Shown here: in pieces, positions 40,713 through 62,931 of the stretch | How positions within the stretch are numbered: the first letter of the stretch is position 1 | Layout: each line of letters starts with the position of its first letter | The notes under the pieces: model-generated | What the model was told of the DNA's origin: nothing | What the model saw: only the letters and a program-made list of their open reading frames with translations | Database searches by the model: none | Program-made: the position numbers and the translations under genes | Assembly (NCBI GenBank): GCA_904063045.1 | Contig: CAJFCJ010000011.1 | Coordinates: forward strand, 620,001 to 684,000 | DNA: 64,000 nt | Reading direction: 5' to 3' | DNA from: Dimorphilus gyrociliatus | Lineage: Eukaryota; Animalia; Annelida

Positions 40713-43700
40713 ATGGCGAATTCAGCTGGAATTATGGCGGATGGTGTAAGGGCGGATGGTTCCTGGGAACTTCATGTTCAAGTTGATGATGTTCCTCTCA
40801 GGGAGCTTGGATCTACTGACCCTTCTACAAGTGTCGACAAAAAGATACGTGTTAGAGGAGACCAACAGATCGGCAGCGTTATGAGCAAGATAACAGAATC
40901 TGTATCGGGTGAGTTGTATAGCGAATATACTACCCGGCATGTGTTCACCATCTGCCTTTCGGCCGCTTTTTTCTAAACATTCCCTTGAGGTTTTATACGA
41001 CGAAGTGTAGAAGGTGGAAATGTCACCAACAGTGCGAAAACTGTTGTCCAACATTACATAACTTAGGCAATTTTCCCTTCGCTTTTCTTTCTTTTTCGTC
41101 TGTGTACTAAATAGAGAAGGAAAGACGAACTTTTGTGTGTGGTCACTTATAATGAATGCAAAGTCTGTTTACAGCGTGTACAAAACCTTCTTTGTCATTT
41201 TAACTATTTCACACGAGGATAGTACAAGCTTCCCGCTGATTTATTCTCATTTACATATCCTTACCCATTTCCGATTGAGATATATTCATATTGTGCGCCT
41301 ATTATTTAGACAAATGCCATGCGTTTTTATAGATATGTGCCATATTAAAAACTGTATGCCAGTATATTCCTTACTTATTTCAATATATTCATAAGCTAAA
41401 TCGTAAGGACTTTTTGAATGTAGATGAGGTATAATATGTATAAATTGTATATAGTGGAGGCGCCAGCAAGCCCTATTGGCTGGTTTCAATTGTAAACGCA
41501 AATGTTTGCTTTGCTGTTTAATTGTGTGCAGAAACTAAGCGAGATACCTCAAATTTCTATATTTATTTATTAAGAAATAATCGAAAATCAATAAGTCAAA
41601 GGACATTTATAAATTGCTTTTATTGACATTAATATCTGTATATCTTTTGCCGATTGTTTTTATTATTCTATTATGCATTCCAAAAGCGTTGGGCGTATAA
41701 CGAGTTTATGACCTTTTTAACCTATGTGTTTAAAATGTCGGATGACCCGGAACAGTTTCACTGTCCAGGTGTTTCAGTATTATCATTATCGCTCAAAATA
41801 TTAGTCATACAAACAATCTTATCTTTAAGTTACGTTCATTTTATGGCAGACTTGTTTTATAACATGTATCATTCAATACTAGTTTTTCCAGATATTTTTA
41901 GGGTCTGTACAAAATACGCCGAGTACTATATTTACGAACAAACTAAACAAACAGCAAACGTGATGCTGCACTCCCCCGACCTGAATTCTTGCCTACTTGG
42001 GATCACTAGGCCTATTTCACAAAGCGGAAATGAAGTTTGGTCTCTTAATGATTGGCATCGTCTAATTTGACATGGCTTAACCGCTTTCTGTCATCTTTTG
42101 AAATTGCTGTACCATATTTCCACGGTTCGCTGTTACCAGCCAAATATGTATGAAATAAAAATTCAGAAGTTTCCTGAATTATGCGATTACCGCACAATCG
42201 TAATAGTTTGTACATATAATTACGCACCACAGATGTTAAATTGCCATTCCTCTATTGTCCGTCGGCTATCCCAGAGAATCAATATTCAAATCACGAACTA
42301 CGAGAACGCAGTTGGAAAAACACTACGATTTTTTCATATTTGAAGTAATTGTTTATAAAAGCTGAGGCCAGTGTCGTGGGGCCGATAAACCTTTTAGGGC
42401 ATTTCCGGTAACGAATCGACGTTGACCCGCCAGCAGCGTTCCGTTGAGTTGATGCTTAATGACATCAAGCTCATTCGTTGGAAATATTTAGCCTATAATA
42501 TACACAGTGTAATGCAGGCCGCTTTATCAAATTAGCTGAGCTATCAACAATCCTTCAGCAAACCGGATCGATGACGTAAATAAATTATTATAGAATACAC
42601 TTAAAAGCAATATATCATTCGTCCGCTCCCTTGCGGACATGGAACAAGAGACGCCACCATGTTAAAAAGACACAAAAGGAACAAAAGTCTTTCTTTATCT
42701 ATTTTAGATTATCAGATATGGAAATAAAAAAAACGTGTCCCCTCCCCTCCTTCAGCCACTTAACTGCCAAAAAAATTGGACATAAATACAACAACAAGCA
42801 AAGGCACGGTACTCGTCTTGACAGTTTTGACAAACTTCCGCCCCAATGACTCGCTACGTTTTCCAATAAATGGAAAATTGTATCGTTTTGTAGGGAGTTT
42901 TGTTTGCAAAAAAGCGCTCAATATATGCGGAGAGTATTTTTCTGTCGGTTTTAGCAAATACAATAGGCTAACATTCCGTTGTTCAAAAAAGAGAAATCCA
43001 CCCATCATCCCTATTTCTCAGAGCCCAACGGGGTAGTATAAATATAATTTAGTTGATCGGATTCCAACTCTGATGCTAAGTTATGAATGAAAGATTAATG
43101 GTGGCGCCCAAATCGCCTTTGTGTCCTCTATGATTATGTAATCGATTTCTCATTGCGTGACGCGAGGAATATTAACAGATTAGTTGATTAGGTCACAGAC
43201 TCCCTTTGTTTGTTCACGTAGAATTAGCTGTCGCTCACCTTTGACACTCGTTCAGAATTATTAAGCGCATTTAGACGCTCTGGCGTCCTCTCTTTGTCAT
43301 CTTCGGTTAATGAGTACGGGCGTCAGTCAGACCACATTAACAACAGAGATTGTTAAAGGCGTCACGGAAATGCTCGTGCGAAATTTCAACGCCCAATTCC
43401 TGAATTTGCGCTAATTCATCGTAGCGGTCGATAAATAATAGCATCTCAGTTACATCATAATTTCGTACCCAGATGATTGAACGTCTATAACGCCTTGCCA
43501 GGCCAACAGCTAGTCAGTATTAATCTAATTCCTCACTCAGTGCTTAATGAGCCGTAGGAGACGCCTCAAGGGAGGGCGTCGAGAGATACTTGCGACGCTA
43601 CTTTCTAATCAGCCTCCCCACAAAACGTTGCTTGATCAAATATTACGTAAAGGCGAAGGTCAGGTGATCTCTAATGGGCAAAGTAAAAATATCAACTTTT

Positions 43701-46700
43701 GTGTAAGCAAAGACTGGAGGATGAAAAATGAAACCATGTGAATTACATAACTACCATTCAGTCTTTTTCTGCCATAAATATTGAGGAAAAACGTCTACAT
43801 TCTTCTTTTGTACATTGCAGTCCTTAGGGAAAATCTTCTATTGATCAAGTTATAATACAATGCCACTTTCTGCCGTTCTTGCTTGATTTAGGACGATCTA
43901 GGCGCTGCGTTTAGACGCCTAGGGACGTTAAGCTTTCAGCGGGTCAAGGCCATTTTCTGCGAATATTTTATTCATGCTGTTTATCACCTATTTATTATAG
44001 ATACTAACTCGTTTTACCTGTTATTCATCAATCGACAAAATAAAATTTTCCAACTAGTCACGATATCATACAATGTTCAGCTGCTTAAGTCATTATCCCA
44101 ATCGACCACCACTTTTTAGTTCTTTACAATAATAGCATGAATATTATTTCTCTCTCTTTGAAATAGGCGCGGAAGAAAACAGAGTATGTTTGTATGAATA
44201 AATATGGATTATACATAGCCATGTCGAAAATATTTGCCCATTTATTAGTTGGTGTGTATTTACAATGGAAATGACTTTTTCGACGCCCTGTTTGTTCAAC
44301 ACGGACGGGTAATATTTCTTAGTCTTTGTTTTGTGTACCAGAAGACGAATCGATTCATAAATATCGTATTGCCTCTTTTGTTATCTTTGGCAAACTTTCG
44401 ATCATGTTTTTGTTGATTTTGGCGTGGCTAACTTATCAATTAATTCACAGATTACGTAATTTCACAGTGTTTCTCCAACATTGGGCCTGAGATCAGGAGG
44501 GTGTTGCTCAGCTGTTAGGGAAGGTATTTTTTTAAGCCAATGCAGCAGCATTCCAAACAGTCTAGTGCTGTATAGAGAGAGTTGAGTATTTGACCTAATT
44601 CTAATAATCTTCGAGGCATCGTATTGATGTGTACGCAAAAAGAGAATAAATAAAAAAAATAGAAAAAAAAACAAGAAATTTCCGATCGATTCCTGTTTGA
44701 CGCATGTGTTGTATACTTGTATTTAAGTTTATATAGTGTGGATTTATTTGGACTGTAAGGATAATACTGAAATGAAAGGCGTTGGAGCGGAACGCCCCGA
44801 AAATTTTCGATTGATGTGAATGCAGTTAGTTAGTCGTGGGAATATTTGTCGTATTCGCAATGCGGCCATTTGGAAGAGCTATAAAAGGAAAAGACAGCAG
44901 AAAAAACGCAAAATGAAGGTTTGATGAACGACGCAGATGTCCTGCAGTCGTGCGGAACTCGCGTCTAGCGATAAGTTGATTGAGTATGTGATTTTCTAAG
45001 TGCTGTCCGCTGTCCAGCTCCGTCGATTGATAAGCATTTAATGAGATTTTGCAGAGTATATACTTTGCAGTCGCACGGCGTCGACGCTAACGACTAGGCG
45101 ATGCGCTATAGTGACGCTTAGAAGGATCAATTGATTTGTTTACGGGCTTTACTCCTTTAGTGCCTTCAATCGTATCAATGCTATATAACCGCAAAGACTT
45201 TTACAATTGTTGTTCGGAAAAATGGTATCGTTTGTCGCTGCGACCTTTGAACTAGGCGGAAAAAAATTCCACAGTGTATTTTTTGTCTTCTCGGCACGTT
45301 CTGTTTGCTGATCTAGTGTATACGATTGGAATTTCGTGCTATGATACCTCACTATAGGCCGACTAAATATATATTCTTGTAATAAATAATGTATACAGTA
45401 TATAAGAAAACTATCCATAGATATAAATCGTTGGAATATTTGCATATAAACTGGATTTTTACTAGCTGATTCGCAATATTTTACCAATTTTTCTTATACG
45501 ACGTCTAATCGCCAATTATCATGTAAATTATTGCCGTCGATTGCACTCAAAACTGCGGGTTGTTTACCAATTAACCACTAAACATGTCCTTACCCGTACT
45601 TTAACTTTATCGTATTCTGAATCTTTTATTTTGTTATACAGATATAGTTCAAAAAGATTGGTCTTGCTACCGGCTATGGTGGCCAGAAAAAAAGTTATGG
45701 CTGAAAAAAACGAGATCTACTTTGGATCAATGTGGTGTTTTATCCACATCGAAATTGGAATTTACTCCAGCGTACAAGTCAATCTACGTTCAATTGCCAG
45801 ATTTGCAACAACGTGAACTGACCGTTGATTTTAGTATGGACGTTTTCGAAGTCATAATTGACTTGTGCAAGCGCTTCAGTAAGTTTTAAATTGAAATTAA
45901 GTAACAGTTTTAATTTAGTACTGCTGTTCTATTATAAAATTAGAATTCTGTTTACAAGAAAACAGGCTGTTTAGCATCATTTTTTTGACAGTTTTAGGCA
46001 ACACCCAACATTTAACTACTTTCAGTAGGCCCACAGTTAGCTTGTTCAAGGTATACTACTCATAAAAAGTTAAAATCTATACCGTTTAAAAACAGTTTAT
46101 TTGTTCTGAAGAGAGAATTATAGCTATATTGCATCAATCGGACGGCAATTGTCAATATTTAACTGCTCTTTTTGCCATTTATATTTATGACTTTTCTATT
46201 AAAGAAAAAGTAACAAGAAAAAGGTTGTCCTTCCTTTAGGAACGGATAAAACTTACAAGTGCAACATTCGAAAGATTTTGAGTGCTTCTCAGCTGTAAGC
46301 AACCGCGACCTTTTGCCCTTTATTTCCTTTAGATGACAGTTTTATATATGACTTTGGATTACATTAGTCTTCTTATCAGTAAAGAGTAGAAATTTTTGCT
46401 CTAGTTTTCATTTAAAGGATATAAGAGCCCTCAAAATACACATAGTAAATATATATAGAAATAGGTTTCGTAGATATTATGTATGCATAGGGCGAATTCT
46501 AAATTTAAGATGAATATTTGTCTTGTGCCCAAAGCATTTTGCACGTGGTAAACATTTACTTAGTCTTAGAAAAAAATTTACGCCTACATATAGCGGCGGA
46601 GTATTGGATTTCAGCTTTCCCCAATTAATCCTATGAGTAATTATTGAAATTGTTCTCTATTAACTTAATTAACTGTATAGTTGAACCATTACGTAGGCAA

Positions 46701-48859
46701 TTCAATCCATCAGCCATACTGGAAAGCGATTATCCTCATTGCTTTTTCAGAAATTCGACACCCGGAAGAACTTTCGTTATCAAGGAAATTAGACAAAGAA
46801 GAGCTTCGCCGCAATCAAGGTATTTCAGCTACAAGAAGACAAGCACTTGGAAATCATTCCCTAAATGGTCACTACATGAGCCACTCTAGTTTGGATAACT
46901 TAGCCAGCCCAAAATTTAATGGAGTAGGATCACCTAATACGCCACAAGTAATACAAGTAGTGCCATCTGCAAGCTGTCAGTTTTTTAAAAAGAGATATTT
47001 GTCCTACAGGGCACATTACGACCGCCTCCTTCACCATACCCATTTTCTACAATTGCTTCTCATAACAATTCTTCCCTACTTAACGGTTCTTTACACAGCT
47101 TGTCATTCGAATTGGACGAAAAATCCTTCACGAATAGTCCACAAGAATTAGATGTCCAAGCAACGCTGCGAGGCTTAAACAGGCCTAGAAACCTGTCTGA
47201 AAAGGCTCGAATAAATGCTGGTTGGTTGGATTCTTGTCGATCCTTAATGGAACAGGATATCGACAGAGGTACTTTACTTCTGCTTCGATTTAAATATGCT
47301 TCATACTACGATCTGAATCCTAAGGTTCGTATTTATTATTTTTTTTTAATGTCTTTTTTTTTAAAACAAACATGTTATATTTGATTTTTTTGAATACAGT
47401 ATGATTCAGTACGAGTCAATCAATTATTTGAACAAGCTAGATGGTCACTTCTAACAGAAACAATTGATTGTACTGAAGAAGATATGGTATTATTTGCAGC
47501 TTTAAATGTAAGTTAGAAATAGCCTAATCTGGTGAAATGATAAGTTTTATATTTTAATTTTTTCAATATAGCATCATATATATTCGAAAGCAAGGAGGGG
47601 AGAGACTGATTTTGTTGACGGAGAAAACAATGTTGATAATGTTGACTCGATGTTGGACGAATTAGAGGTTTATCTAAATCTTTGAGCGTTTCAAGCGACG
47701 TGTAATTTAAAAAATTCTTTTATAGAGTGCTCTTGCGGGAACACACGGACTCAATACTTCGATTGTTATCGAACACGTTCCGGAATTATGCAGTCAACTG
47801 CAATATGTCACAAATAAGTAAGCCTTGTTAAATATTATGAACTACAGATGGCACCACGCGAATAACAAATAATTTTTTAAATAATCGATAGACCAAAAAA
47901 ATCCTTGTTACCGGACTTGTCAAAAAAGAGGAAACAAACTAGCTTTTTCCACTTGAAAGAAAAGACTTTAAGTGCATACAAACGGCGAGAAGATAAAGAC
48001 GTCACAAATCCGTCGTGGTCGGTTGATTTGGACGAATGTGAAGTTAGGGAAGAAGTGAATCTCAGCACGAGACTCTTCGTTATTCGGTTATTCACTTCAT
48101 TAGGTTCTGATGGATTTTCTGAATTATGTCTACACTGCGATAGCGTGAGTAATGCTTCTAGGTAAAACCTTAAAATATTAAAGCGTCATACCTTTGTAGC
48201 AAGAACAATTCAAAGATTGGGTGACAGCCTGTAAATTAGCCTCTCGAGGAAAAACGATGGCTGATTGTTCCTACCAGTTGGAAAAAGACGCTCTACAAAA
48301 AAAGCTCGACATGCTAACTTTCGAAACGTCTTCTCCTACTGAGCGCCTGTCAAGCGCCGAAATGTACGTCTCTCCAAAGTATATGAAGAAACACAAGTCG
48401 GGAATTATTTCGAAAATATCGGCTGTGTGTAGTAATAGTAAATTAAATAAAATGAGCATAAATGAAGCTAAGATGCAATATCTAAAACTATGGCAAGACC
48501 TACCTGAACAGCCTTTGACCTATTTTATAGTTCGTTTCGATGGATCGAAAAAGGAGGAGCTGTTAGCGATCGCTGCCGATAAAATAGTGAGAATGGATCT
48601 AATAAATGGGTCTGTCATTCAAAAATGGCCTTTCAAAAATATGAATCGTTGGCACGTAAATTGGCAAACAAAACAAGTTTGTATTGAATTTAGAGAAAAA
48701 ACGAGAGAAAATACCGTCAAATTTTACTGTTTAACTGCTGACTGTAAAACTGTTCATGAATTTATCGGTGGATATATTTTCGTGGGGATGAGGTCGGCAG
48801 ATAAAAGCCAAACTCTGGATAAAAGTAAATTTTATAAATTAACTGCTGGAAGAGAGTGA
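40713..48859 (+). CDS. FERMT: Kindlin/fermitin family FERM-PH protein; exons 40713-40908, 45642-45878, then 46751 onward (several)
   Basis: F0 [18 protein letters not shown]. Exon 2 (absent from the ORF track in this frame) reads DWS..LWWP..WL..TLDQCGV..FTP..VQLPD..VDFS. Then [22 protein letters not shown] domain, [13 protein letters not shown] and F3 [18 protein letters not shown]. Confidence 0.95.
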
Positions 48860-51800
48860 AAACTGGTGTAGTGAATATTATAGTGAAAGATGCAAAAAAT
48901 GCTTTGGAAATTGATGATGCGGTGCTGTTGCTTAAAAGATTATTTAAATTTGTTAAATTAATTTTATCTATTATGGTTTTAAAAAACTGCAGGTGTATAT
49001 ATCATATGTATACAGTATACATGGTAAATTTATACTTCCAATTTGTGGATAATAATAGTGATATTATCAATATAAGTAGTTGCAAGCACTAGTTGAAAAC
49101 GGAATCAAGTCTGATACGATTTTAATCATTCATTTCTTATTACTGGAATCATGTTAAGATTAAATAAAAAAGATTAGCACAAAGACAAATTAACGCTAAA
49201 ATCATATACAATTAAATTGTGGAAGTGCTTAAATTTTTCCTATCAATACTGAGTGCAACTCGTATGAAATATATACGAAATGTTACATATTAATGTCACA
49301 AAATATCTGTATACATGTATGCTAATATACGATTCATATGCTATTTTCATAAAAGTTATTAACTCTTATTATTCTAACTTAATATTTCTCTCTATTGCTG
49401 TGACACTTGTTGATATTATTCATGTTGTAACGTAAAAAATGCTTGTTTGTGTAATAGACTTTATAAAAAGAATAAAAATCTAAGCAAGCCGATAGATGTC
49501 GCCACCAATTTGATTTAGATGAAGAAAACGAAGGGAGCGTCAATAACGTATATGTTCTCGGATAAATAATAAGAGGAGAGTATGGAAGTAGGCGGTTTGT
49601 AGTGTGCGTGACTAGAAGAAAGCGTACAAGTCTGGCTGTCAGCGAGGCTTGTCATAATGTCGACGTGCGTATGACGCTTTTGCGGTAGAGACGCTCGAGG
49701 CAGGTACGCGATGCTAAGACGGTTGCTTGCGACCTCTGAACAAAGAGATAGGCCGCTCATCTTCTGTGTGATTAGTCCATCAGCGCAAGACTATATGCGT
49801 TCTCTGATCACAGGCGTCATCCTTCCCGCAGGCAAACGACGTCTCTTTTTTGTTCCACTCAGCGTGATCTTGCCCTTTGGTCTGTTCGTTTTTAATAGCG
49901 TGTATATGCACTATACACATTTCTCTATAGCACGGCCAATAAGAATATAATACGATCAATTGACCCGCGAGCACCGCTCAACGGCGATAAGACGCTCAGA
50001 CCACAAAAGACACGCGAAATTGACGCCCAAACACGCACCGAGACACGTGCACATACGGACGGCGTCACTCTAAACGCGCTCTTCGGACAAATGAACATTG
50101 TCACGTGACCCTTCCGACTTTATATGACTCTAATTGCGTGTGCGTGCGCCCTGACCTTGCAGTCGGATCATCGTTGGATTTGCTATAAAATAAAGATTTC
50201 ACTAGATGGTAAAACTCCTTTTAGTTGTCTCTTTTAATAAATAATGAGGGATAATAGTTGAATTGATATAAATATAGTTGTATGCATACGGTACACGTTG
50301 TGTGAGCGAGAAATAAGAGGCGAAAGTCGATGGGGGGGGCTTGATTGAATTATTTCAAAGTTATTCCTTGTACACATATGAATATGCAAATACATGTCTC
50401 TATTTGCGTATTGACCCAACATTCACCCGAGCAGAGCAGATGCAGATAACGGAATCGGAAGAAAAGACGCGCCTTCTGCTTCTATTACGTCATACGTACC
50501 GAGTGACGCGCTGATGATTTATATGTGCTGCGAGGAGTAAGCTCTTTTCTTACACGCACACACGTCTTCTACCATGTGTATTGTAACAAAGCTTTTACTG
50601 ATATAAATTATAATAAAAGAGAAAGATAACGCTTCTTCGCGGCCTATTTATCTCTTGACCGGTACAAAATAGATCACCCACATTCCAAGTATATTACGTC
50701 ACAGCAAGAAGCCATACAGCACCAAAGTGCATCTGTCCCTGCCCCTTGCAATTATCTATACATATGAACCTTAATGTATGCAATATGTATATTTGGGTGT
50801 GTATTTGAATGCATAAAGATTTTAAGCATACATATACTTATATTTATTTTTGGTATTAACTTATTTATTTGTATTTGTTCAATTTTATAGGAATATCGTT
50901 AAAAGTATTAGCTCGATAAACAATTTTCGTATGTCTAATTCAGAAGATTTGATATTTAATAACCATACTTACATAATACAGACAAAAATTGGTATAAATT
51001 ACTACATTTTCTACATTTCCGTTATGTTCTGTACAAATAGTTATCCAATCCATTATAAAAATCGGTTTATCTATATGTACAAGATATAGATATATTTATA
51101 TAAGATCATAGTCTAGTGCCCAAGTTAGATTCGTGACTCTTAACTGAATATTGGCGTTTTATTGGCATGTATTTTATCAAAATCAGTACTTACGATACAT
51201 GCATGCATGCATTTTTATTTGCGTGCTTGCGTGTCTTTTTTAAATATAGATTCCTTAACCGTTAAGAACTTTTTAAAAGAAAAAGTGAGTTCAAAAGCTA
51301 TTCAACTCAACAATCCAGAGATCCAACGAAACCGAAGGAGTATACATAACGAGTAAAAACCCGATATGACTTGTTAACTGTGTTACGTGAAATCGCGCAA
51401 GAAAATATTGCGCAAGTAGCGGATATATTATGCAGTAGGGCATTTGCCGCACGCTTGCAGATTAATCGTCAGAGCTGGTGGTTCTGTCTCAAGCAAATAA
51501 ATAGTTGATGAGAGTCTAGGAGAAAATGTAGATACAAAAAAAATTGTGTATTTTTTCGCGTACGTAAGTGTAAATAAAAACTATATAAATGTGTAATTAA
51601 CAAAATTATCATTAATCGTTTGCTAACAACAATCAATCGGATTAATTTTTATGTGTAATTTATTGTTATTGCACTATTTATATACTTTAATATGTAGACC
51701 TTTATTGTTCACTTATGGCCTCCTCTTCACGACCTTAAACATACATGAATATATGGTGTATATTTATATATTTGCATATATGGTATATCTATTTAATGTA

Positions 51801-53550
51801 CAGAGAAAATGAATAATTTTCCAACAGGCCCGTAATAAAAGTATAATTTCCGCCTTGCGCCTATAAGCAAATTAATTACAACGAACGCGTATACAATTTA
51901 ACGAAACTATATAGAAATATATTCGAGAGTGAGGAAAAAAATGCAATTTGAAACGTATATGGAAAACGGTCAAACTATGAATGACCCCGAACGTGAACGT
52001 ACGCAAAGTGATGTAACGACACATAAGCGGAAAACAACGAAATCATGGCGCCCATACGCATAACGATTACTCAATTTTGCATATTCGTCGGCTGCTTAAT
52101 TAGAATGCTGATTGTTGAACGAAAAACTCGCTCAGCTCTTAGCTCAGCTGACCGTTGCGTAATTTATCGGTGACCCACTTTTCAGCGGTTGTCGACCGAT
52201 GCACGTCCGCATAGCGTCTCTTCCATCCACGGTTTTAAGTTCTAGGAGAGCAACGAAATATAGGATTTTTCGAGGAACAAATTAAATAAATGTGTACTAT
52301 AATGTTTGCGTAATAGCCTAAAGCAGCTTAGACGAGAATATAGCACGTGTTGCGCGGTTCGACGAGATTACGTCATACTCGCTGTGTTCTGTTCTCGTTA
52401 CAACCCAAGTTTTGACCTCTTCCTCAGCTATATGGCGTTGTTTGCTTACAACGTTTTCGTTTAGCCTGTATATATATAAGATTTGCGTGCGTTGATTTTC
52501 CGATCATCCTAATATCGAAACGGATCGTTGAAATGCGTGCGCCGGCGCCTTGAACTTTGCCGTCACCTTTCCCGCCTCCTATATATGCACGATGGCGTCT
52601 ATTCTAAGAAAAAGTAGATCGATTGTATCGTGCCGTTTTCGGCGCTAATGACCAAAATTAATTTTAATTTTGCTTTCAATTTAAGCCATTTTTACGACCT
52701 TGTAAACGCCTTTGAACGTTTATATAGACTGATGCATGCATGTGAACGGAACTGATTGATAACGCCAACTTTTCGCACACGTATAAAAATTTTAATTGAA
52801 AAATTGACATTTTTACTTTTTAAAATAGGTGAGTTATAAAAAAGGGCGCCAAGGAGCTGGCGTCGTTATTTTATTAAGCTTATATATATTTTTAGCAAGT
52901 GCAAGCACGTTGCACAAAGTATGATATAACAACAGGCCTGAGCTGATTTCAGGACTCAGCCTGGTCAGGCAGCGGTCAGAATGTTCCATCGATTTATTGC
53001 GCCATTTCTGCGCGCTGTTACGCACCTCTGACGCGTCTTGTGACCTACTTACGCAGTAACGCCGCAACGTCTACTATATATGTTCGCATATAGAAACGCT
53101 ATACAGCGCCTACCTTATATATTTCCTGCTTTGAATGGTTTAGTAGAAAATTTCTCTTTTCATCTATACTACTTTCTATTCGATAAAATGAAACTGACAC
53201 CGATGACGTAAGAGAACCTAATGCGTTATTTACGACCGTCCCATACATCACATACGGCGTCCTTTCAAACCCCTTATGGACAACGATCGCGTAACAGAAC
53301 GTAATGGGGATGCGTAACGCTGCAAGTGACGCTATAAATATAACCGCGATCGAACGATGACCGAAAAGTGAATTTTTTCAATTTTCTTATTTTTTTACTT
53401 CCCTGTCTTTGAAACGAAAAAAAAGAAGCCAACATCTACTTTTCATAGAAAAGTTAGACACTTTTTTGAATATAAACCAGAGTAAAAGAAGCCACGCCGT
53501 TGGAAATTAAGTAAAAAGAGAGAAGGGCCTCGCGATGACCCCAAGAGAGC

Positions 53551-53640
53551 GTTACGCAACCCTTATACGCAGTGCATTGGAAGAAGGGCATGTATATGAA
53601 AATCGGTCGCTGATTGGTTGATTTCGCTGCGCGCATGCGC
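53551..53640 (+). promoter_or_regulatory. Proximal promoter of the bZIP gene: GTTACGCAAC (53551-53560), reverse CCAAT (53613-53617), NRF1 palindrome GCGCATGCGC (53631-53640)
   Basis: Motifs read directly 210-300 nt upstream of the ATG. Confidence 0.55.
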
Positions 53641-53852
53641 CTCTTCTCTAAAATGTTAGTTTCATGCTTGGCGCGCTTTTGTCCACATTATTGTGCAAGG
53701 GGTCAGAGTTGGTGCAGCAGTCGGCATTCTCACGCCCAGATCGAAGGTGGACAGGCCGCTGAAATTCGATACAATAAAGGTAGGTTGCAGTTTATTTTCT
53801 GCATTTGCAGTAGGCAAATGGCACGACGTGATGACGTGATGTTACAGTCAAA

Positions 53853-54584
53853 ATGGCGGCCGCAGTAAGTGACGGCGCGCTGGATCTATCGAAATCTACA
53901 TCTGCAATCAGCCCAAGCCCCGAACCTGCAAACAGCCTCTCCTCCGACTTAGAAACCGATGACATGAATGCGGCAAGCGTTAAGGAGGAGCTCGACACAG
54001 AAACACCGAATGCCAATCCACCATCTCCATCACCTTCAAGACCATTCAAATCCTATCCGTTTGAGTCACTGGCCAGTTTGTATGGTCCTCTTGGTCTTGG
54101 AGCAGCCTCTCCCGCCCCTCACCCTGCCCTCTATAACCCGTATGCTCCGGGTTCGACGCTCGGTGGTTTATCGGCCCTTCCCGGTTTCGATACGGCCGCT
54201 GTTTCATTGTCGTCGCCTATAGCTCAATATCTTCAACAACGGAGACGACGAACGGAATCGAGAAGTTCCGTTTCTCAATCGGCGTCTACTTCTTCTCAAT
54301 CATCAACCAACCAACTTAACGACGCTCAGCAACCTGCCTCTTCCTCATCGCCCAACAAGGTAACAAATTCTGGTTCAGAGAAGAAGGATGACTCTTATTG
54401 GGAGCGCCGACGGAAGAATAATGAAGCTGCGAAAAGATCGCGAGATGCTCGAAGGGCAAAAGAAGAGGAGATTGCCATGAGAGCAGCATTTCTCGAACAG
54501 GAAAATCTAAAACTTAGAGCGCAAGTCGCTATTTTAAAGAACGAGACAGCGAAACTGCATTATATGCTCTACAATCGTATGTAG
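53853..54584 (+). CDS. ces-2: PAR-related bZIP transcription factor, CES-2/Giant-like, single coding exon
   Basis: Basic region [41 protein letters not shown] plus leucine zipper; RPFKSYP motif; ALDLS CtBP-type motif. Assignment to ces-2 rather than giant or another paralogue is tentative. Confidence 0.88.
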
Positions 54585-56147
54585 AATGTATCTGTTAGGT
54601 ATAATTGTGTGCAAGACCGGTGCTTATCTGTATTTGACCTAGAAAAAAATTAAAAGTTCGGAAACAACGGGTGACGCTTTGTACATATACATTTCTTCAC
54701 GTTTCGTTTTTGTATCCATGTTTCCTTTTCAATCCATGTATAAATGAAAAGCGCCGATCTAATGGGTTTCGCGGTCGCGGCTTTTCGTTAAACAAACATT
54801 CCCATTTGTATAGAAATAAGTTTTTAAACAGCTGCGAACAAATCGAACAGTCGCGCACGGAAACCCGTATATTTGCATCTGTACATGATCCATTTTATCA
54901 TTAATGACGTAACACCACCGAAACTAACCATTATATATGTTTGTGCTTATATACTATACAAATATAAATATAAATTTAAACATACGATGTAGTTGTTCGG
55001 AAAGGAAGTATTCATACTTAATAGTTGCTTAAAAAGAAATGAGATGACTTAAGAAAAAGCATTAAGTGATAAATGTATAAATTTTTCACATATCTAATAG
55101 ATAGTTTATGTAATTTAAACTATAAACAACTATATCTTTCACGATATATGTATAAATAGATACATATTTAATATATATTCGCTTGTGGATAGGGCATGCA
55201 TTTTATACATGCATAAATCAATTCACATGCAAGTAGGCATGTAAAGAAAATCGTGCGTCAATCGACACGCCCGCTATAGAGAAAATCGTACGAATATTTA
55301 TTAAATTATATACATTGTTCTTTGAAGAACGATGTTAATTATGCACTCGTCAAGAAAAACCGAAAAATATCTTATTCCCATCACCGTATTTGTCGACTTT
55401 TAAGAAAAAGAGGAAGAGAAATCAACGCTTAATGTTAATGCAGAGAATGCTAAGTGTCAGGGCAACCGGATACTCCCAAAGTGCGGTTAAAGAATCTCCA
55501 TCTATCTCGCATCCCTTGTCTTTCCCGAGAGATTCTGTCAAGCTCTCCCACGTTCACGAAATTTGGAATTTGGAGCGGTCTGATTGTCTTTTAATAAGAA
55601 AAGTGGAAAGTAAAAGTTGATGAGTCGTTTTCGTCATTCTATTTGCGGACGTGGCGGATATGACGTAACGTTGGCCGTGCATTACTGTCGCGCACGATTT
55701 GCATACATCCCGCCCCCTTTCCGCTTTTAGAACCCTTATTCGTCGTTGTGCAATCAATCGTAATGCGGCGATACGCCACCGCAATTTTGCGTCATAAGGG
55801 AAATTAGAAGAGTGACGTCACGATAAGGGTAAGGTCTATACAGTGTAGAAGGAACAAGCCACACCCGACAATCGTATCTACGAGCCATTAGGCAAGTTGC
55901 GGCTCTTTTGAAGTGTCAGTGACGAGCGGTAATCAGCGCATGCAGAGTTCGCCAAATTTAGCGTGCGTTCAGGAAGAAAGAGGCCATTTGTAGAGGAAAT
56001 ATACAACGTTAGATCTTTCACTTTCCATTTTTTTTTATTTTCACCGTCTTTTTTCTTTAAAGTTCGTTTATATGTACTCTCCGTATACATATACATACAC
56101 ACGCATCAACGAACGAACACCTGCTCTCTCTAGACGCTCGGAGACGT

Positions 56148-59100
56148 CTATACCGTTATTTCATTTAATAGAACATTTTGAGCTGCGTGAAGTCCTTCTG
56201 ACACCTGTAATAATAAACATCATTATTTGTCCGTTCTCAAAATCGTCCCCGATAAGAACGTCTACTATTTCACAACCCTAAACTTTCTTATTATGAGTCG
56301 TTCATAACCTGTGCATACGCCTCAAAAATGCATTACAGCTTTATATATACTTTCCCTTTCCTACTTTACATATATAGCCCAAGTTGCGTAATAAACTATT
56401 AGAGCGATAGATGGCGCCACAAACCTCTTTAAAGAAAGTAGACATGTAGCGTATAGGAAATAGAGCTGTACCGTTGGTTTCGTAACCGTCTCTGCCGACA
56501 CCGGGACTTCCAACGGTGCTGAATATTTGCATTGAAAACAAGGAAACTGTGCCGAATAAATGGCACAATAAAGCCCCGACAGAACTCTCAGGCAGAATGT
56601 ACTTGCTGCACAAATTCCACATTCCTCTATACAAGAGTAGTAAAGCTATTAAGGCGAATACATAGACACAATCTTCGTAGATTAGTCGCCATCGTTGCCG
56701 ACCGTCCATCGACGCCGACACCCTGGCTAATTTTGTTTGGAAGACGAAGAGCGACGTGCTTATAAAATAACCAGCTACCACGCAAAATAAATCGGATATT
56801 CGTGGTTGGTTCGGGAAAATAAATACATCCATTAGATCCCAAGCGTTTTTCCAGACAGATACTGCTAGGCCAAAAACAATCACGTGACTAAGAAAAGCGT
56901 CGAGGAGGTAGGGGAAGAGGTCGTTTTTTCGAGGCTGAAAATAAACAGAATGACGTAATCGAATTGACGAATTCACGCGGAGAATGTGGAAAAGAATTCA
57001 CTGAAAGGCACGACACATCAATTAAACGTGCGATATTGGCGGGAAGCTACTTGAAATTAAAGAGGACGTCCCTTACCATACGATTCATCAAGGTTGTAGG
57101 CCTAAGGAGGTCTGGTCGAAAGTCCAAATTAACGGTAAACGGGGGCCACATGCTCGTTCTTGACGTCCTCATTAAAACGAGTAGGAAATAAGACACGGAA
57201 AGCACGATTGCTGATCGTTTCCAATTATCTCCTTCCGCTTCACTCAGAACACCCCAGCCTCCCCTCCATACACTCATGTTCATCCAACTGTAAGCATACA
57301 TGTAAAAGCGGCATAACATACCCCTCAGTGTTCCGTTAATATTACGCAATTGGCGTTCCAGTAGAGGTTGAGAGAAATAAGCTGCTATTCCAAATAAACC
57401 AAATATGTACATGCTTCCGAAACGAATAATCTTAGAGTAACGAGGTAAGACATAAATATCTAATAGATCCCAACTACCTCGCCAATAAATAACAGTCATG
57501 GGAAAGAAAACTATCGAAGATAAGAAACAATCTACAATTTTGATTCTTACTCGGTCCATTCTTTCTAGATAAATCTGCGCTTTATCAGTTGTTTGTCAAA
57601 CATGTCAATAATGATGAATATCCAGAATTATCTATACTCTTTTAGTTGTGCTATTTCTTTTCTAGAAATTAGATACTTTAAATTTAATTTTATTCATTTT
57701 AAAATTTTTTTGTCACAAATCGGAAAAAGGTAAAGTTTGGAGTTACAAGAATTTATAATACCACAGACCTCTAATAAAAGCGTAACTCTCTTTCATTGAC
57801 GTAAAGCGACCATTTAATTTCTTTTACTATTTTTATCGAGAGTATTGGCACATCTTTATGCTTTCCGTTTTACATTTCAATTATCAGAAAGCTCTAAAAT
57901 TCCTTGTTACATAATTTTTATTTATAGAATACTTTATTTTTTCTTCTTTTAAAAAATTGTTACAATTAAATGGATCCAAGTTATATATATATATTACCAG
58001 TGCTTACAATTTAGAATATGCAAATTGTACTTTCCTTTCTTATTACCTTTTTTGACAAGTAGTTCCTAATAGATATAGGGTTATTCAGACTTTTCATTCT
58101 GTTTTTCCTCAAATATTTTACTTATACAATAATAAATCGTTTCTAATTGATTATTAAAGCCAGTTCATTTTTAAAGTTTTGCAATTTATTAGTTAGGATT
58201 CATTCAATATAAAAAAAACAACATATAATGTTCAAATCCTGACTTCTAGGAAAGGTATTGTCAATTATGATTATTTAATATATATATATATATATTCTAG
58301 TGATGTATTTTGATTTCGTTGTATTCTTTGACAGGACTAAAAATATTCATCACTTCTATCTAAAATGACATCCAAGGCAAATTGTTTTTTTTTCTAAATA
58401 GTAATCTAGAAACATCAATGATAAATTGGAAGCACCTTCCCTTGAATTTTTACACGCGTTAATTTCTTGTTAGATTGTGCTATTTTGGATTTTTAAAATT
58501 GTTTAAAACATTTTAAAATGAACTTTAAGATTAAAAGCTTTCAATATATATACTAAATCGTTTTTGCTATGAGGGTTTCAACTCTGTTCCATTTCGCCTA
58601 GTTTCAAAATGATTGAATAAGCTGAAAGGAACTTATATCTTTTATGTTGAAAAATTATAAACGGAAGATGGAGCTTCATTCTGGGTGATGAACCAATGCC
58701 CCCTATAGTGCAACTCTGACATATTTATTACTTTCCAAGGAATATTGTAACTTTCCCTGCGTTTAAATATTTGTCTATTTTGGGAGACGTCATACATAAC
58801 ACTTTTGCCATAAATTAAGCAAGATATTTTTTATACCATACTTTCTTTGAAAATGATTTAGCAATCGTGTTTGACGGTAAAACAAGTTGCTTTTATCTGA
58901 GATAAGATTTCAACTTAAGAATTCAGCTGTAGTATGAAGAGTTCTTTCTGTTAGCATATTTAAACAATCAGCTTCCTGTTAGAATTAACACATTGCATTT
59001 TACAAATCATTTTAGCTGATCTTGATAGAATGTATATAATAAATATTTCGAAGATTTTTTTCTTGAGTACTTTTACAAGCATATACAAAGCATATATTCA

Positions 59101-61284
59101 AATATTTCTCTTCAGCTTCTCAAAAGTCAACTACAACACAAAATTGGCTTATTAGTTGTGATAGTAATAAAAAGTACATGTACTTATTATGTTAAAACTC
59201 AGGTATACAAATAAAAATGAACATAACTATTAGACTTTCTCAGTCTAATCACGAATGTCAAACATTAAATTCTAGGCGACAAGAAAAAATTTACTCTCGC
59301 TGTGAGAATCCAGATGGCACTACCCTTTAATTATAACAAAGAGTTTACATTATGAGAATTTCGAAAGATAAAGTGTTGGCGACTTCATCTGATATTACTC
59401 CGAATACTAGCTAATATATACTTATATGTTTTAATACATAATTAATTTCCTCAAATTTCAACAATTGCTTTAAAAAAATTCACGCTCCAGACATAACTTG
59501 ATTAAGGATTTATTTAGGTTGAGTAACTGACAAACATTAATATTGAAGTTTATATGAAGAAAAATTTTAAACAGCTAATAGAATTACTATTTTTTCACGA
59601 TAGGATACAAATCTTTGTCACCCGCAATCCTTAAAATATTCAACCTATTGAGGATAACAATAACGTTTCCTGAGTGACCCATTAATCAAATCAAGTGGCG
59701 GATAAACAGCCCTTCGTAATAAAATACAGTAGTCTTTTAAAAAACGAAGGGTGTCAGCAGGTGTGCGCAAACAGTTTAGTCAGATTAATACGCTAATGAA
59801 AAGCTGCTGCGTCAATAATGACATTTGGTGAGACGTCCAGAGAGAATTTCACGTTTTCATGATCAAAGTAAAGAGGTTTTGAACGATTGTCTCCCTTTTG
59901 CTGCTGTAATTAACTGGGGTTCATATAGAACTTGCTGTTCAATCTAATATGAAGAGTATTGGTTTCAAATGTCACGCTGTTGGAAATAAGTAAGCATTAT
60001 AACATTGTGCCATTTTATCTGGAAAAGAATATTATTGTCATACAAACAACAACAGTTGGTCAGAGTTCGTACTTTGCTGACCTCGACCCTATTAAGTGAC
60101 ACTCATCTGGCGAAGAACTTTATTTAAAGCATTCCACTCATCACCTTATACCCAACGCAGATGTTGAAGGTGTCTAATTGAACAATCGGCGTCATATTGT
60201 TGTATTGTTAACGTCAGCGTCTTTTTATTAAGAGTAAATGGTAGAAAGATTATACTGTATATCTGATCGATTATTTTTATATAAATGATTTCTATGATGA
60301 TTAATTCCGTAAAAAACCGATATTGTTTACTTTTATCTAGGAGTATTTAGAGGGACATCCTTGCATAAGAAGTAATTAGACGAAAACGATCAACATGTCC
60401 TTGGCTATGTGGTATTCCATTCACATACTACTGTAAATAAAGGGTAAATTGATAATTTAACGTTTCATTTCATACTTAGGCAGTAAAACAAATTTTCTTT
60501 CAAGCACTGAATATGGAATCTTATACATTCATTAGTGGATATGACGATCTTAACTTTTTAATACATGAATATTATTCAAGTTTTATTTTATTTTTTTCAA
60601 ACAGCAAACAAAAAGATAAAAAAGCTGAAATAACAAAATGAACGTTCTAAAAGTTCCTCGCTACAGTTAGTTTTTAGAGTAGCAGATGGAGCTATAAGAT
60701 ATGCTTTTTTCGTTGCTTAAAAATGCTAAAGGAGGAAATTCTTTACCTACTTGTATTTCACTCCTGCTAAGTAGGTTGATGGTCAAAGCTAGATTTATTA
60801 TTCCTTACTACGCAATGAATTTTTCAAAGGAATGTTAATCCACTGCATAAATTGGAGCATAAAACACGTTTTGTTCATTTTACTTCATTTTTATCACAAT
60901 TTTTAATCAGATTTATTTTTTTAATAGCCTTCAAATAATTCATAACTAATACTCAATGTTCTATTACATATCTATTACTTGTTATACTGTATTATAAAAT
61001 CAATTTTTTTATGCTAAATTAAAGGATTAATGATGAATTTTAATATTTCAGAGTATCTCTATTTTAAAGCGTGTTAAATTTCATCAGTTGTAAATAAAAG
61101 TATGAATAGGAAAAAATGCTAAATAGATAAGTGTCGAAAAAATAATATTTCTAAATTTTATATATAATATAACCCTAAAAGAGATATTACGCTCTGTAAA
61201 AACGATGTTAAACAGTACATTCTCTACTTCACTTCGCAGATGCTCCAGGCGTCTAATTGACCAAAGCAAACTCCCAGCCGCCAT
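56148..61284 (-). CDS. fusl: Fuseless-family multi-pass membrane protein; core exons 57564-57077 and from 56934; putative exon 1 61284-61191; putative last exon 56204-56148 (otherwise stop at 56341)
   Basis: Repeated W-R/K-G/N-x-W motifs (YWRGSWDLLD, VWRGGW, VWKNAWDLMD, LYRGMW) in a duplicated hydrophobic unit. The GTAAGG donor at 57076 joins the TTTCAG acceptor at 56935 in frame. The terminal exons are inferred from splice sites and frame only. Confidence 0.8.
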
Positions 61285-61323
61285 ATTGTGATGCCTCGTA
61301 ACGTGTTTCACTAAACTGATTGG
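61277..61323 (-). promoter_or_regulatory. Minus-strand promoter candidate: CCAAT (61319-61323) plus YY1-type AATATGGCGGC (61277-61287) over an ATG
   Basis: Same arrangement as at BAHD1, in a GC-rich island within AT-rich DNA. Confidence 0.5.
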
Positions 61324-62430
61324 CGACGCCTTGCCAGATGCGTCCTATTGTACACGAGGCGTCTCTTTCTAGATATGATGCGAATACAAAATTTTTGGCC
61401 ACCAAAAGCGTCTCTTTGTGCGATCGGCGCCGTCTAATGCGTTCGAAATCTAGTTAGAATTGATTGAAAGAAAAAGAGCATGTGCGACGGAACGTGAAGG
61501 CGAAGAGGCGCCGTATGGGCGTTTCTTTTTGACGTAATTCGACTGCGATTTCGTCTGGTAATTGAATAACTGAATTTCTGTCGTTGAATTCGAGAATTTC
61601 GTCTTTCCTTGAGAATCAGTAATAGCTGATGACTGATAGAAGCTATCCTTTCTTTCCTCGCTCAGAATAATTTAATTTAAAATCAAACTGAGTTGCCGTT
61701 AACTTTTAAAAGAAATTTAAGATTTACAAATTGCTGGACAATAATACATATATTTATGCTATACTCCAGACTGTTTTAATGTCGTTAATTCACATTGCTA
61801 TTAATCAACGTCTAGAAAACTTGGTAGAATTCTCAAAGGCATTGGGTAGCTAAATTGGACAACTTAAAGAAAATCAATCTTGGAGGAGACTTTTTCTATT
61901 GTTAAATAATTTTGGATGATGTATCAAACTAACATTAAGGCCTCAATCACCAATTGAATACGTTTGATAATTAAATTTTCTTTTGATTAATTGTAACAAA
62001 GTTGTTAATTCTACTTTTATTAAAAGCATATAAACTTTTGGGTCACATGACATCTTATGGAAATTAGTCCATTTTTGCATGAATAAACAATTCGTGAGCA
62101 TCTGCTAAGGGATAACAAATCTGTTGCGGCATTTTAAAGTTATACTATCTTCATATCATTCATATTAGACTTTCAAATATTTTATAAGCACCTCATAAAA
62201 TTAAATTTTAAATTTGTAAACAACAGATATTGTGATAAAGTAGTAGTGAAAGTAGTAAATAGGCCTATTAGCTTTACGTATTATTATGTTTTGCACTTTC
62301 AGGAACAGGTAACAAAAACGAATGTTTTACTTTACATTTACATCTGAAAAACTTAAAAACAGCGAAGGTAATATTTTTTACATTCGTTCTGTTGTCACTT
62401 AACCTAAAAATCTCAGCCCTTGAAAACATC

Positions 62431-62511: not shown

Positions 62512-62931
62512 ATGTCTAACTTTCATTCTTCTTCTACTGATGAGTGCGATTTCGATGATATTATTGATCCATCATCTCCAGGTGGTTCGAAGAAACCTCG
62601 ACTAACGATAAATGCTAGAGAGAGACGTCGCATGCATGATTTGAACGATGCTCTTGATGACTTGAGAAGTGTTATTCCTTATGCCCACTCTCCGAATGTC
62701 AGAAAATTATCTAAAATTGCTACACTTCTTCTGGCAAAGAATTATATTTTGATGCAGGCAAACGCCCTGGAAGAATTAAGGCGGATGATTGGAGTGATGA
62801 ATGGAAATGTTGCTCTTGGTCTAGGAAATCAAACAAATTTAACGTCTTTTGGAGCGAATTTTGGTTTTCAAAGTTTAGAAACATCAGGAGATTTTAACAG
62901 ATGTGGAAAGAGAAGAAAAATTGACACCTAA
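62512..62931 (+). CDS. BHLHE22: Beta3/Olig-family bHLH transcription factor (BHLHE22/23, Drosophila Oli-like), intronless
   Basis: [62 protein letters not shown] is nearly identical to the Beta3 bHLH. Confidence 0.95.

Follow-up and report, generated by a model that had tools for sequence, protein, structure and literature searches.

A conserved cluster of candidate bZIP-binding sites around a CES-2/Giant-like bZIP gene of the annelid Dimorphilus gyrociliatus

Does a basic leucine zipper (bZIP) gene of the miniature annelid Dimorphilus gyrociliatus lie in an array of sites that its own product may bind, and does it regulate itself in this way? The question arose from a stretch of 64,000 nucleotides (contig CAJFCJ010000011.1, positions 620,001 to 684,000), here called the window, in which a single open reading frame on the forward strand, 53853-54584, encodes a bZIP protein of 243 amino acids, putatively of the CES-2/Giant type. 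A first-pass annotation had reported a dense cluster of bZIP-type 8-mers at 50485-57804, nearly all of them non-coding, on both sides of the gene and in introns of the neighbouring gene fuseless, and had interpreted it as a candidate autoregulatory circuit. The genome of D. gyrociliatus has 73.8 Mb, its introns have a median length of 66 bp and its intergenic regions are short; chromatin accessibility (ATAC-seq) and transcription start (cap analysis of gene expression, CAGE) data have been published (PMC7854359). The genome paper and its supplements mention neither bZIP motifs nor this gene.

Here we examined whether the cluster exceeds chance. All 22 listed positions were exact. In the interval 50485-57804 (7320 bp, GC content 0.39) the word TTACGTCA/TGACGTAA is present in eight copies; 2000 dinucleotide shuffles gave 0.33 on average and never more than 3. 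The word TTACGCAA/TTGCGTAA is present five times (shuffle mean 0.54) and the degenerate pattern T[TG][AG]CG[TC][CA]A 18 times (shuffle mean 2.5). The Poisson probability for eight copies of TTACGTCA/TGACGTAA is 2.5e-9, or 8e-5 after correction for all 32,896 8-mer classes. In an unbiased count TGACGTAA is the joint commonest 8-mer of the interval; the word tied with it and most of those just below are AT-rich and of low complexity. Six of the eight copies extend to TTACGTCAT. A repeat origin of the TGACGTAA sites was ruled out because the flanks of all copies differ. The other 56.7 kb of the window contain only two copies.

To these words belongs a family of nine, i.e. the 8-mers built from the half-sites TTAC, TGAC and TTGC around a central CG. 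The family occurs 16 times at 49300-57900 with 2.1 expected, and eight times in the rest of the window with 7.3 expected. Therefore, the excess is local. A CpG or methylation artefact was rejected since dinucleotide shuffles preserve the CpG content. In addition, DNA methylation (5-methylcytosine) is negligible in D. gyrociliatus and the observed/expected ratio of CpG is 0.9 (PMC11292947); accordingly, CpG depletion cannot explain a CpG-centred cluster. Apart from the full 8-mers, TGACG alone was enriched as an isolated half-site, and the full sites largely accounted for this.

Are the sites conserved? A Logan contig from another dinophilid (L007/L011) is collinear with positions 44195-57638. 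Two further contigs, L012 and L013, are from the same species as L011, with identical sequence, so this amounts to one close-relative comparison. Identity to the relative is 75% at 44.2-47.7 kb, 84% at 47.7-49.1 kb and 89-92% at 49.3-57.6 kb; beyond 57.6 kb only short patches align. The bZIP gene and fuseless thus lie in a block of 8.3 kb (49335-57638) that is set off from flanks which are 75% identical or unalignable. In the bZIP coding sequence 53 of 243 third codon positions differ between the species (22%). In contrast, divergence is 6.3% in the upstream non-coding DNA (51815-53672) and 1.8% in the 3' untranslated region (3'UTR; 7 differences in 396 nt). This demonstrated strong constraint on the non-coding DNA around the bZIP gene.

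Twelve sites of the family, at 50485, 50694, 51408, 52155, 52306, 52368, 53204, 53552, 54905, 55661, 55787 and 55813, are all kept in the relative. Eleven are identical, and at 55787 TTGCGTCA has changed to TTACGTCA (TTGC to TTAC), i.e. within the family. With a neutral 8-mer survival of 0.14, derived from the 22% third-codon divergence, the probability of keeping at least 11 of 12 is 3e-9. In the locus of the relative, taken by itself, 13 sites of the family fall within the 6.7 kb that are orthologous and one within the other 14 kb. The sites on the side of fuseless behaved differently. This gene (PF15993, reverse strand, 56025-57650, identified by a profile match and RNA contigs) has introns at 56203-56422 and 56935-57076 according to RNA contigs. 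The sites 56384 and 56951 are located in these introns, as had been claimed, and 57342 is in a coding exon, the only site placed in coding sequence by the RNA contigs; the statement that nearly all sites are non-coding was thus correct. All three are destroyed in the relative, each by a CpG transition, 57342 with a second substitution. A TGACGTAA copy upstream of fuseless (57797-57804) lies in sequence for which no alignment to the relative could be made. Because these four sites are unconserved, the core conserved cluster is 50485-55820 and excludes the fuseless side. The enrichment over 50485-57804 is real, but the conserved part ends about 2 kb earlier than originally proposed.

Next to the close relative, distant orthologous loci were available, in which protein identity outside the bZIP domain is about 50%. 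Family members were counted within 10 kb on either side of the orthologous gene and compared with the mean of block shuffles. The counts were 19 versus 3.7 at locus L001, 28 versus 3.6 in Paralvinella (L003), 40 versus 3.5 in Capitella (L004), 11 versus 1.9 at L005, 12 versus 3.6 at L006 and 4 versus 1.1 at L009. We further counted 12 versus 3.1 in the brachiopod Lingula and 11 versus 2.9 in a scallop; in the hemichordate Saccoglossus no significant excess was seen (9 versus 4.2). Hence at least four further annelids show an enrichment of the family around their orthologue. As a control we used one non-orthologous Capitella locus of 25.6 kb (EHD/Yippee/nuclear receptor). It contained nine sites against a shuffle mean of 3.6 (0.35 per kb), all nine palindromes and none a hybrid of two different half-sites. 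At the Capitella bZIP locus the 40 sites include 24 hybrids and amount to 1.91 per kb, i.e. 5.4 times the density of the control. When all 2080 central-CpG NNNCGNNN words were ranked in seven pooled orthologous loci, TGACGTCA was first (34 versus 1.9), TGACGTAA second (41 versus 4.7), TTACGCAA seventh and TTACGTAA tenth; the words ranked between the family members were mostly simple repeats and GC-rich words. Synteny with fuseless or with a basic helix-loop-helix (bHLH) gene was rejected as a cause of the cluster, as in L001-L006 neither is found closer than 10 kb to the orthologous gene.

A separate observation concerns the L001/L002 orthologous locus. It carries eleven copies of TGACGCAT, often extended to TGACGCATATA, possibly a dispersed repeat. 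TGACGCAT has been described as an 'emergent' site of the JUN-ATF3 heterodimer (PMC5349851).

What can be said about the encoded protein? Its bZIP_2 domain (PF07716) matches at residues 178-231 of 243 (E 1.7e-17); the bZIP domain as a whole covers residues 178-236 at the C-terminal end, and the protein stops seven residues past the zipper. The best named homologues are annelid (Paralvinella, Capitella), followed by mollusc and brachiopod proteins, with source names such as 'ces-2-like', 'protein giant', 'HLF-like' and 'DBP-like'. We take it for a CES-2/Giant-type bZIP protein, a presumed kinship which is based on the database names of the matches. In an alignment of 15 orthologues the bZIP domain hardly varies, and its DNA-contacting basic core does not vary at all. 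Upstream of the basic region the alignment has low-complexity, serine-rich and poorly conserved sequence with no evident PAR domain. At residues 9-13 stands the motif ALDLS, which the aligned orthologues from annelids and molluscs share and which reads ALDFS in Lingula; RPFKxYP and SPIxQYLQQRKRR are further conserved motifs.

The closest solved structure is that of the NFIL3 bZIP domain (PDB 8K86), and seven base-contacting residues have been defined in its complex with TTACGTAA (PMC10941009). All seven (R80, N83, N84, A86, A87, S90 and R91) are identical in the D. gyrociliatus protein, which therefore should recognize TTAC half-sites, as had been assumed for proteins of this class. NFIL3 binds the hybrid TTGCGTAA about 4-fold more weakly than TTACGTAA (0.18 versus 0.042 µM; PMC10941009). 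DBP, HLF and NFIL3 homo- and heterodimers showed 'an unmistakable affinity' for TGACGTAAT in SELEX (PMC5349851). The CtBP-type motif that had been noted is indeed present and conserved, and ALDLS is a proven non-canonical CtBP-binding site in EBNA3A (PMC2883600). By this analogy a repressor function of the bZIP protein via ALDLS is plausible, and a role of CtBP is predicted.

The bZIP gene is transcribed and spliced, as judged by RNA contigs of run X10 that are at least 99% identical to the window. The mRNA comprises a non-coding first exon on the forward strand (53673-53777; record 4), a 68-nt GT..AG intron in the 5' untranslated region (53778-53845; joint 53777/53846 in the contig) and a second exon, 53846-54984. 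The latter contains the coding sequence (53853-54584) and a very strongly conserved 3'UTR of at least 400 nt (54585-54984, the transcript extent being that of the contig). Position 53673 is the start of an RNA contig, and the true transcription start is possibly further upstream. Relative to this first known mRNA base, the core cluster of 5.3 kb runs from 3.2 kb to 0.1 kb upstream and continues with a TGACGTAA site in the 3'UTR (54905) and with sites as far as 1.2 kb beyond the stop codon. Promoter-proximal are TGACGTAA at 53204 and TTACGCAA at 53552 (53204-53559), both read directly from the sequence. Between them, at 53280-53345, three CGTAA half-sites and a TGACG directly precede a TATAAATA box at about 53333. 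The downstream group, TGACGTAA at 55661, TTGCGTCA at 55787 and TGACGTCA at 55813 (55661-55820), is located in the intergenic DNA between the 3' ends of the convergent bZIP and fuseless genes. The block 55661-55820 is 95-96% identical in the relative, and the site at 55813 is the one full cAMP response element (CRE) of the core cluster. In addition, a variant site, TGACGTGA at 53832, sits in the 5' intron and is conserved in the relative.

Taken together, the cluster very probably constitutes a functional, selected, bZIP-responsive cis-regulatory array of the bZIP gene. Which factor reads it? A TTAC half is present in nine of the 12 conserved sites. In the explanation which we favour, dimers of the PAR/NFIL3/CES-2 class, the gene's own product included, would bind via this half. 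The product would recruit CtBP through ALDLS and thus damp its own transcription, and the TGAC or TTGC half of these sites would serve activators of the CREB/ATF or C/EBP type. The outcome would be a feed-forward loop with negative feedback, resembling the CREB-NFIL3 circuit of vertebrates. We give an even chance to autoregulation as a contributor; the mechanism in its entirety, with the product on the array, damping by CtBP and shared activators, may just as well be wrong as right. Oscillatory or pulsed expression, which had also been suggested, is speculation. From the original interpretation as an autoregulatory circuit, the non-random, locus-specific and conserved cluster and the NFIL3-type contacts stand, whereas the fuseless-intron sites are not conserved.

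Several findings weigh against this explanation or narrow it. Compared with the conserved local background the excess of retained sites is modest (P = 0.011 against all 8-mers, 0.05 against CG-centred 8-mers). According to the Capitella control, block shuffles understate the background of palindromic sites about 2.5-fold. As the understatement is no larger than this, the annelid signals of 5- to 11-fold are solid; at 3.4- to 3.9-fold, those from L006, L009, Lingula and the scallop are no more than suggestive. The half-CRE TGACG is present in eight of the 12 conserved sites, and therefore CREB/ATF could account for most of them. TGACG is also the only half-site enriched by itself (21 versus 9.5), and the cluster in the window has no copy of TTACGTAA, the optimal PAR palindrome. 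Finally, the half-site mix differs between species, with full CREs dominating in L001 and L003, although the bZIP domain is nearly invariant. A single autoregulating homodimer does not agree with this. The pattern argues for sites that are shared by several bZIP classes and would receive input from more than one of them; CREB/ATF, C/EBP or another PAR factor as input would fit equally well as the gene's own product.

The alternative which survives best carries this thought to its end. The cluster could be a signal-responsive enhancer array read exclusively by other bZIP proteins, CREB/ATF via TGACG and C/EBP or true PAR proteins via TTGC or TTAC, and the gene would be an inducible or clock-output target without self-feedback. 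TGACG is the top over-represented NNNCG 5-mer of the core region, the orthologous loci L001 and L003 have 10-12 perfect CREs, the family optimum TTACGTAA is missing, and vertebrate Nfil3 is a CREB target (PMC4438979). Yet four conserved sites have no TGAC half, and the TTAC half of nine of the 12 is not preferred by CREB. In Capitella, 24 hybrid sites are found at the bZIP locus and none at the control locus. Moreover, the gene's own product, given contacts identical to those of NFIL3, should bind wherever it is expressed. We consider an array without self-feedback a serious possibility that falls somewhat short of an even chance.

A second alternative is that the hybrid sites are targets of one particular heterodimer, composed of a TTAC-preferring and a TGAC- or TTGC-preferring monomer, by analogy to the ATF4-C/EBP composite sites. 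At 49300-57900, 13 of 16 sites pair TTAC with a non-TTAC half and none pairs TTAC with TTAC (P = 0.013 for zero among 16 by random re-pairing of the halves). In the published SELEX study, 72% of heterodimer motifs were conjoined half-sites (PMC5349851). However, the pairing bias is not significant for the 12 conserved sites taken alone (P = 0.087), and in a hand tally the halves in Capitella and Paralvinella paired near random expectation. Besides, PAR/NFIL3 proteins seldom heterodimerize outside their own family. A dedicated heterodimer thus appears improbable. The notion that the cluster is a functionless by-product of composition, chance or passive survival in a conserved block, or that it serves fuseless, can draw on the roughly 90% identity of the whole 49.3-57.6 kb block, in which sites would largely be kept anyway, and on the four unconserved fuseless-side sites, but it is hardly tenable in view of a 24-fold excess over shuffles, the exclusion of CpG depletion as a confounder and the first and second ranks of TGACGTCA and TGACGTAA at orthologous loci that have no fuseless within 10 kb and whose non-coding DNA is presumably too far diverged for alignment.

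Returning to the shared array with self-damping, a bolder version would make it the remaining core of an ancient circuit, annelid-wide and possibly spiralian-wide. The hybrid PAR-CRE and PAR-C/EBP sites would be shared competition sites, at which a CREB/ATF or C/EBP activator, turned on by a signal, induces the repressor and the repressor then displaces the activator, both at its own gene and at those it targets, resulting in a pulse. We regard this as rather unlikely. If true, a single ancestral bZIP feedback module would have given rise both to the CREB-NFIL3 loop of vertebrates and to any autoregulation of Giant, and it would have persisted even in a genome that is among the most compact of free-living animals.

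Some features of the locus and its surroundings are recorded here in their own right. Within the core region a short (ATGC)n microsatellite at about 51199-51212 is the source of most ATGCATGC copies. At 53596-53640, an inverted CCAAT box (CTGATTGGTT) and an NRF-1-type palindrome, GCGCATGCGC, are 30-70 bp ahead of the RNA contig start at 53673. This could be a second promoter element; 53280-53345 and 53596-53640 may be two promoter elements of the gene. Upstream, one TGACGTAA and two perfect TTACGTAA copies at 42572, 43643 and 44452 fall within 1.9 kb of GC-richer sequence, at or near the 5' part of a gene with FERM/IRS domains. The alignment to the relative ends before 44452, and 42572 and 43643 are outside the relative's sequence that was retrieved.

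On the other side of fuseless follows a bHLH gene of the Beta3/Olig type (62512-62931, corresponding to 10001-10525 of L007). Its product is 73% identical between the dinophilids, that of the bZIP gene 95%. Close to it only short non-coding patches align, 59637-59867 (88%) and 61255-61545 (79%). In the syntenic relative the bHLH gene is adjoined by an EHD gene, and EHD and Yippee adjoin in both Capitella (L017) and the dinophilid (L007). The linkage of bZIP, fuseless and bHLH genes was observed in dinophilids only.

Metatranscriptomes from coral tanks and reefs (runs X1-X4, X7 and X9) contain contigs that are 95-99% identical to 52000-57900, non-coding DNA included. These were rejected as evidence of transcription because they cover non-coding DNA and look like contaminating dinophilid genomic DNA. 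A dinophilid worm was probably present in those samples, and some of its genomic DNA in the RNA libraries.

What would a confirmed circuit mean? It would provide a clear spiralian example of bZIP feedback, with conservation at the level of the individual sites and of the cluster. The main interest is in this deep conservation and in an unusually large block of constrained non-coding DNA in a very compact genome. Although distal regulation is believed to be largely lost in D. gyrociliatus, the bZIP gene retains about 8 kb of highly constrained non-coding DNA. The animal is tractable, with ATAC-seq, CAGE and staged RNA-seq for its small genome, and the 12 defined sites are a set for reporter and binding work.

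Among known systems the CREB-NFIL3 (E4BP4) circuit of vertebrates is the nearest. NFIL3 was originally found on an ATF-type site; CREB induces NFIL3, which competes at CREB and C/EBPbeta sites and represses its own promoter, and a pulse results (PMC4629104, PMC4438979). In common with it, the D. gyrociliatus locus has a gene for a bZIP protein, there a repressor, with the same base contacts, and CRE-like as well as PAR-like sites in its own regulatory DNA. The architecture of the proteins differs. The D. gyrociliatus protein has its bZIP domain at the C-terminus and ALDLS at the N-terminus, as in CES-2/Giant, whereas in NFIL3 the bZIP domain is near the N-terminus and is followed by a long repression domain. 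Also, the 12 D. gyrociliatus sites are dispersed over 5.3 kb, and binding and repression are predictions here.

In Drosophila giant, the bZIP domain is likewise at the C-terminal end, and the Lingula orthologue has been named 'protein giant' by NCBI. Giant is a short-range repressor which is partly CtBP-dependent. The genetic evidence for autoregulation of gt is weak; Gt is predicted to bind its own enhancers, and the gt domains intensify late in gt mutants (PMC3016493). Overall, the Drosophila evidence suggests auto-activation and not repression, unlike the damping proposed here. We know of no gap-gene role of a giant-type gene in annelids.

With C. elegans CES-2 and the PAR family (HLF, DBP, TEF, Pdp1) the protein shares the pattern of the basic and fork regions, and half-site recognition is expected to be the same. 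It differs by having no evident PAR domain upstream of the basic region. A description of ces-2 autoregulation was not found in the literature searched.

ICER, which is made from the P2 promoter of CREM, is an inducible bZIP repressor whose gene is placed behind a CRE-type cluster that its own product can occupy. Here, too, a bZIP gene, putatively that of a repressor, is accompanied by clustered CRE-type sites that its own product may occupy. ICER has full CREs in one compact promoter cluster, in contrast to the mostly PAR-CRE and PAR-C/EBP hybrids up- and downstream of the D. gyrociliatus gene. The type of circuit is already known, then, and the locus would be a further instance of it and not a new kind of mechanism. 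If confirmed, it would link the pulse generator that CREB and NFIL3 form in vertebrates with Drosophila giant and C. elegans ces-2 by a shared regulatory logic.

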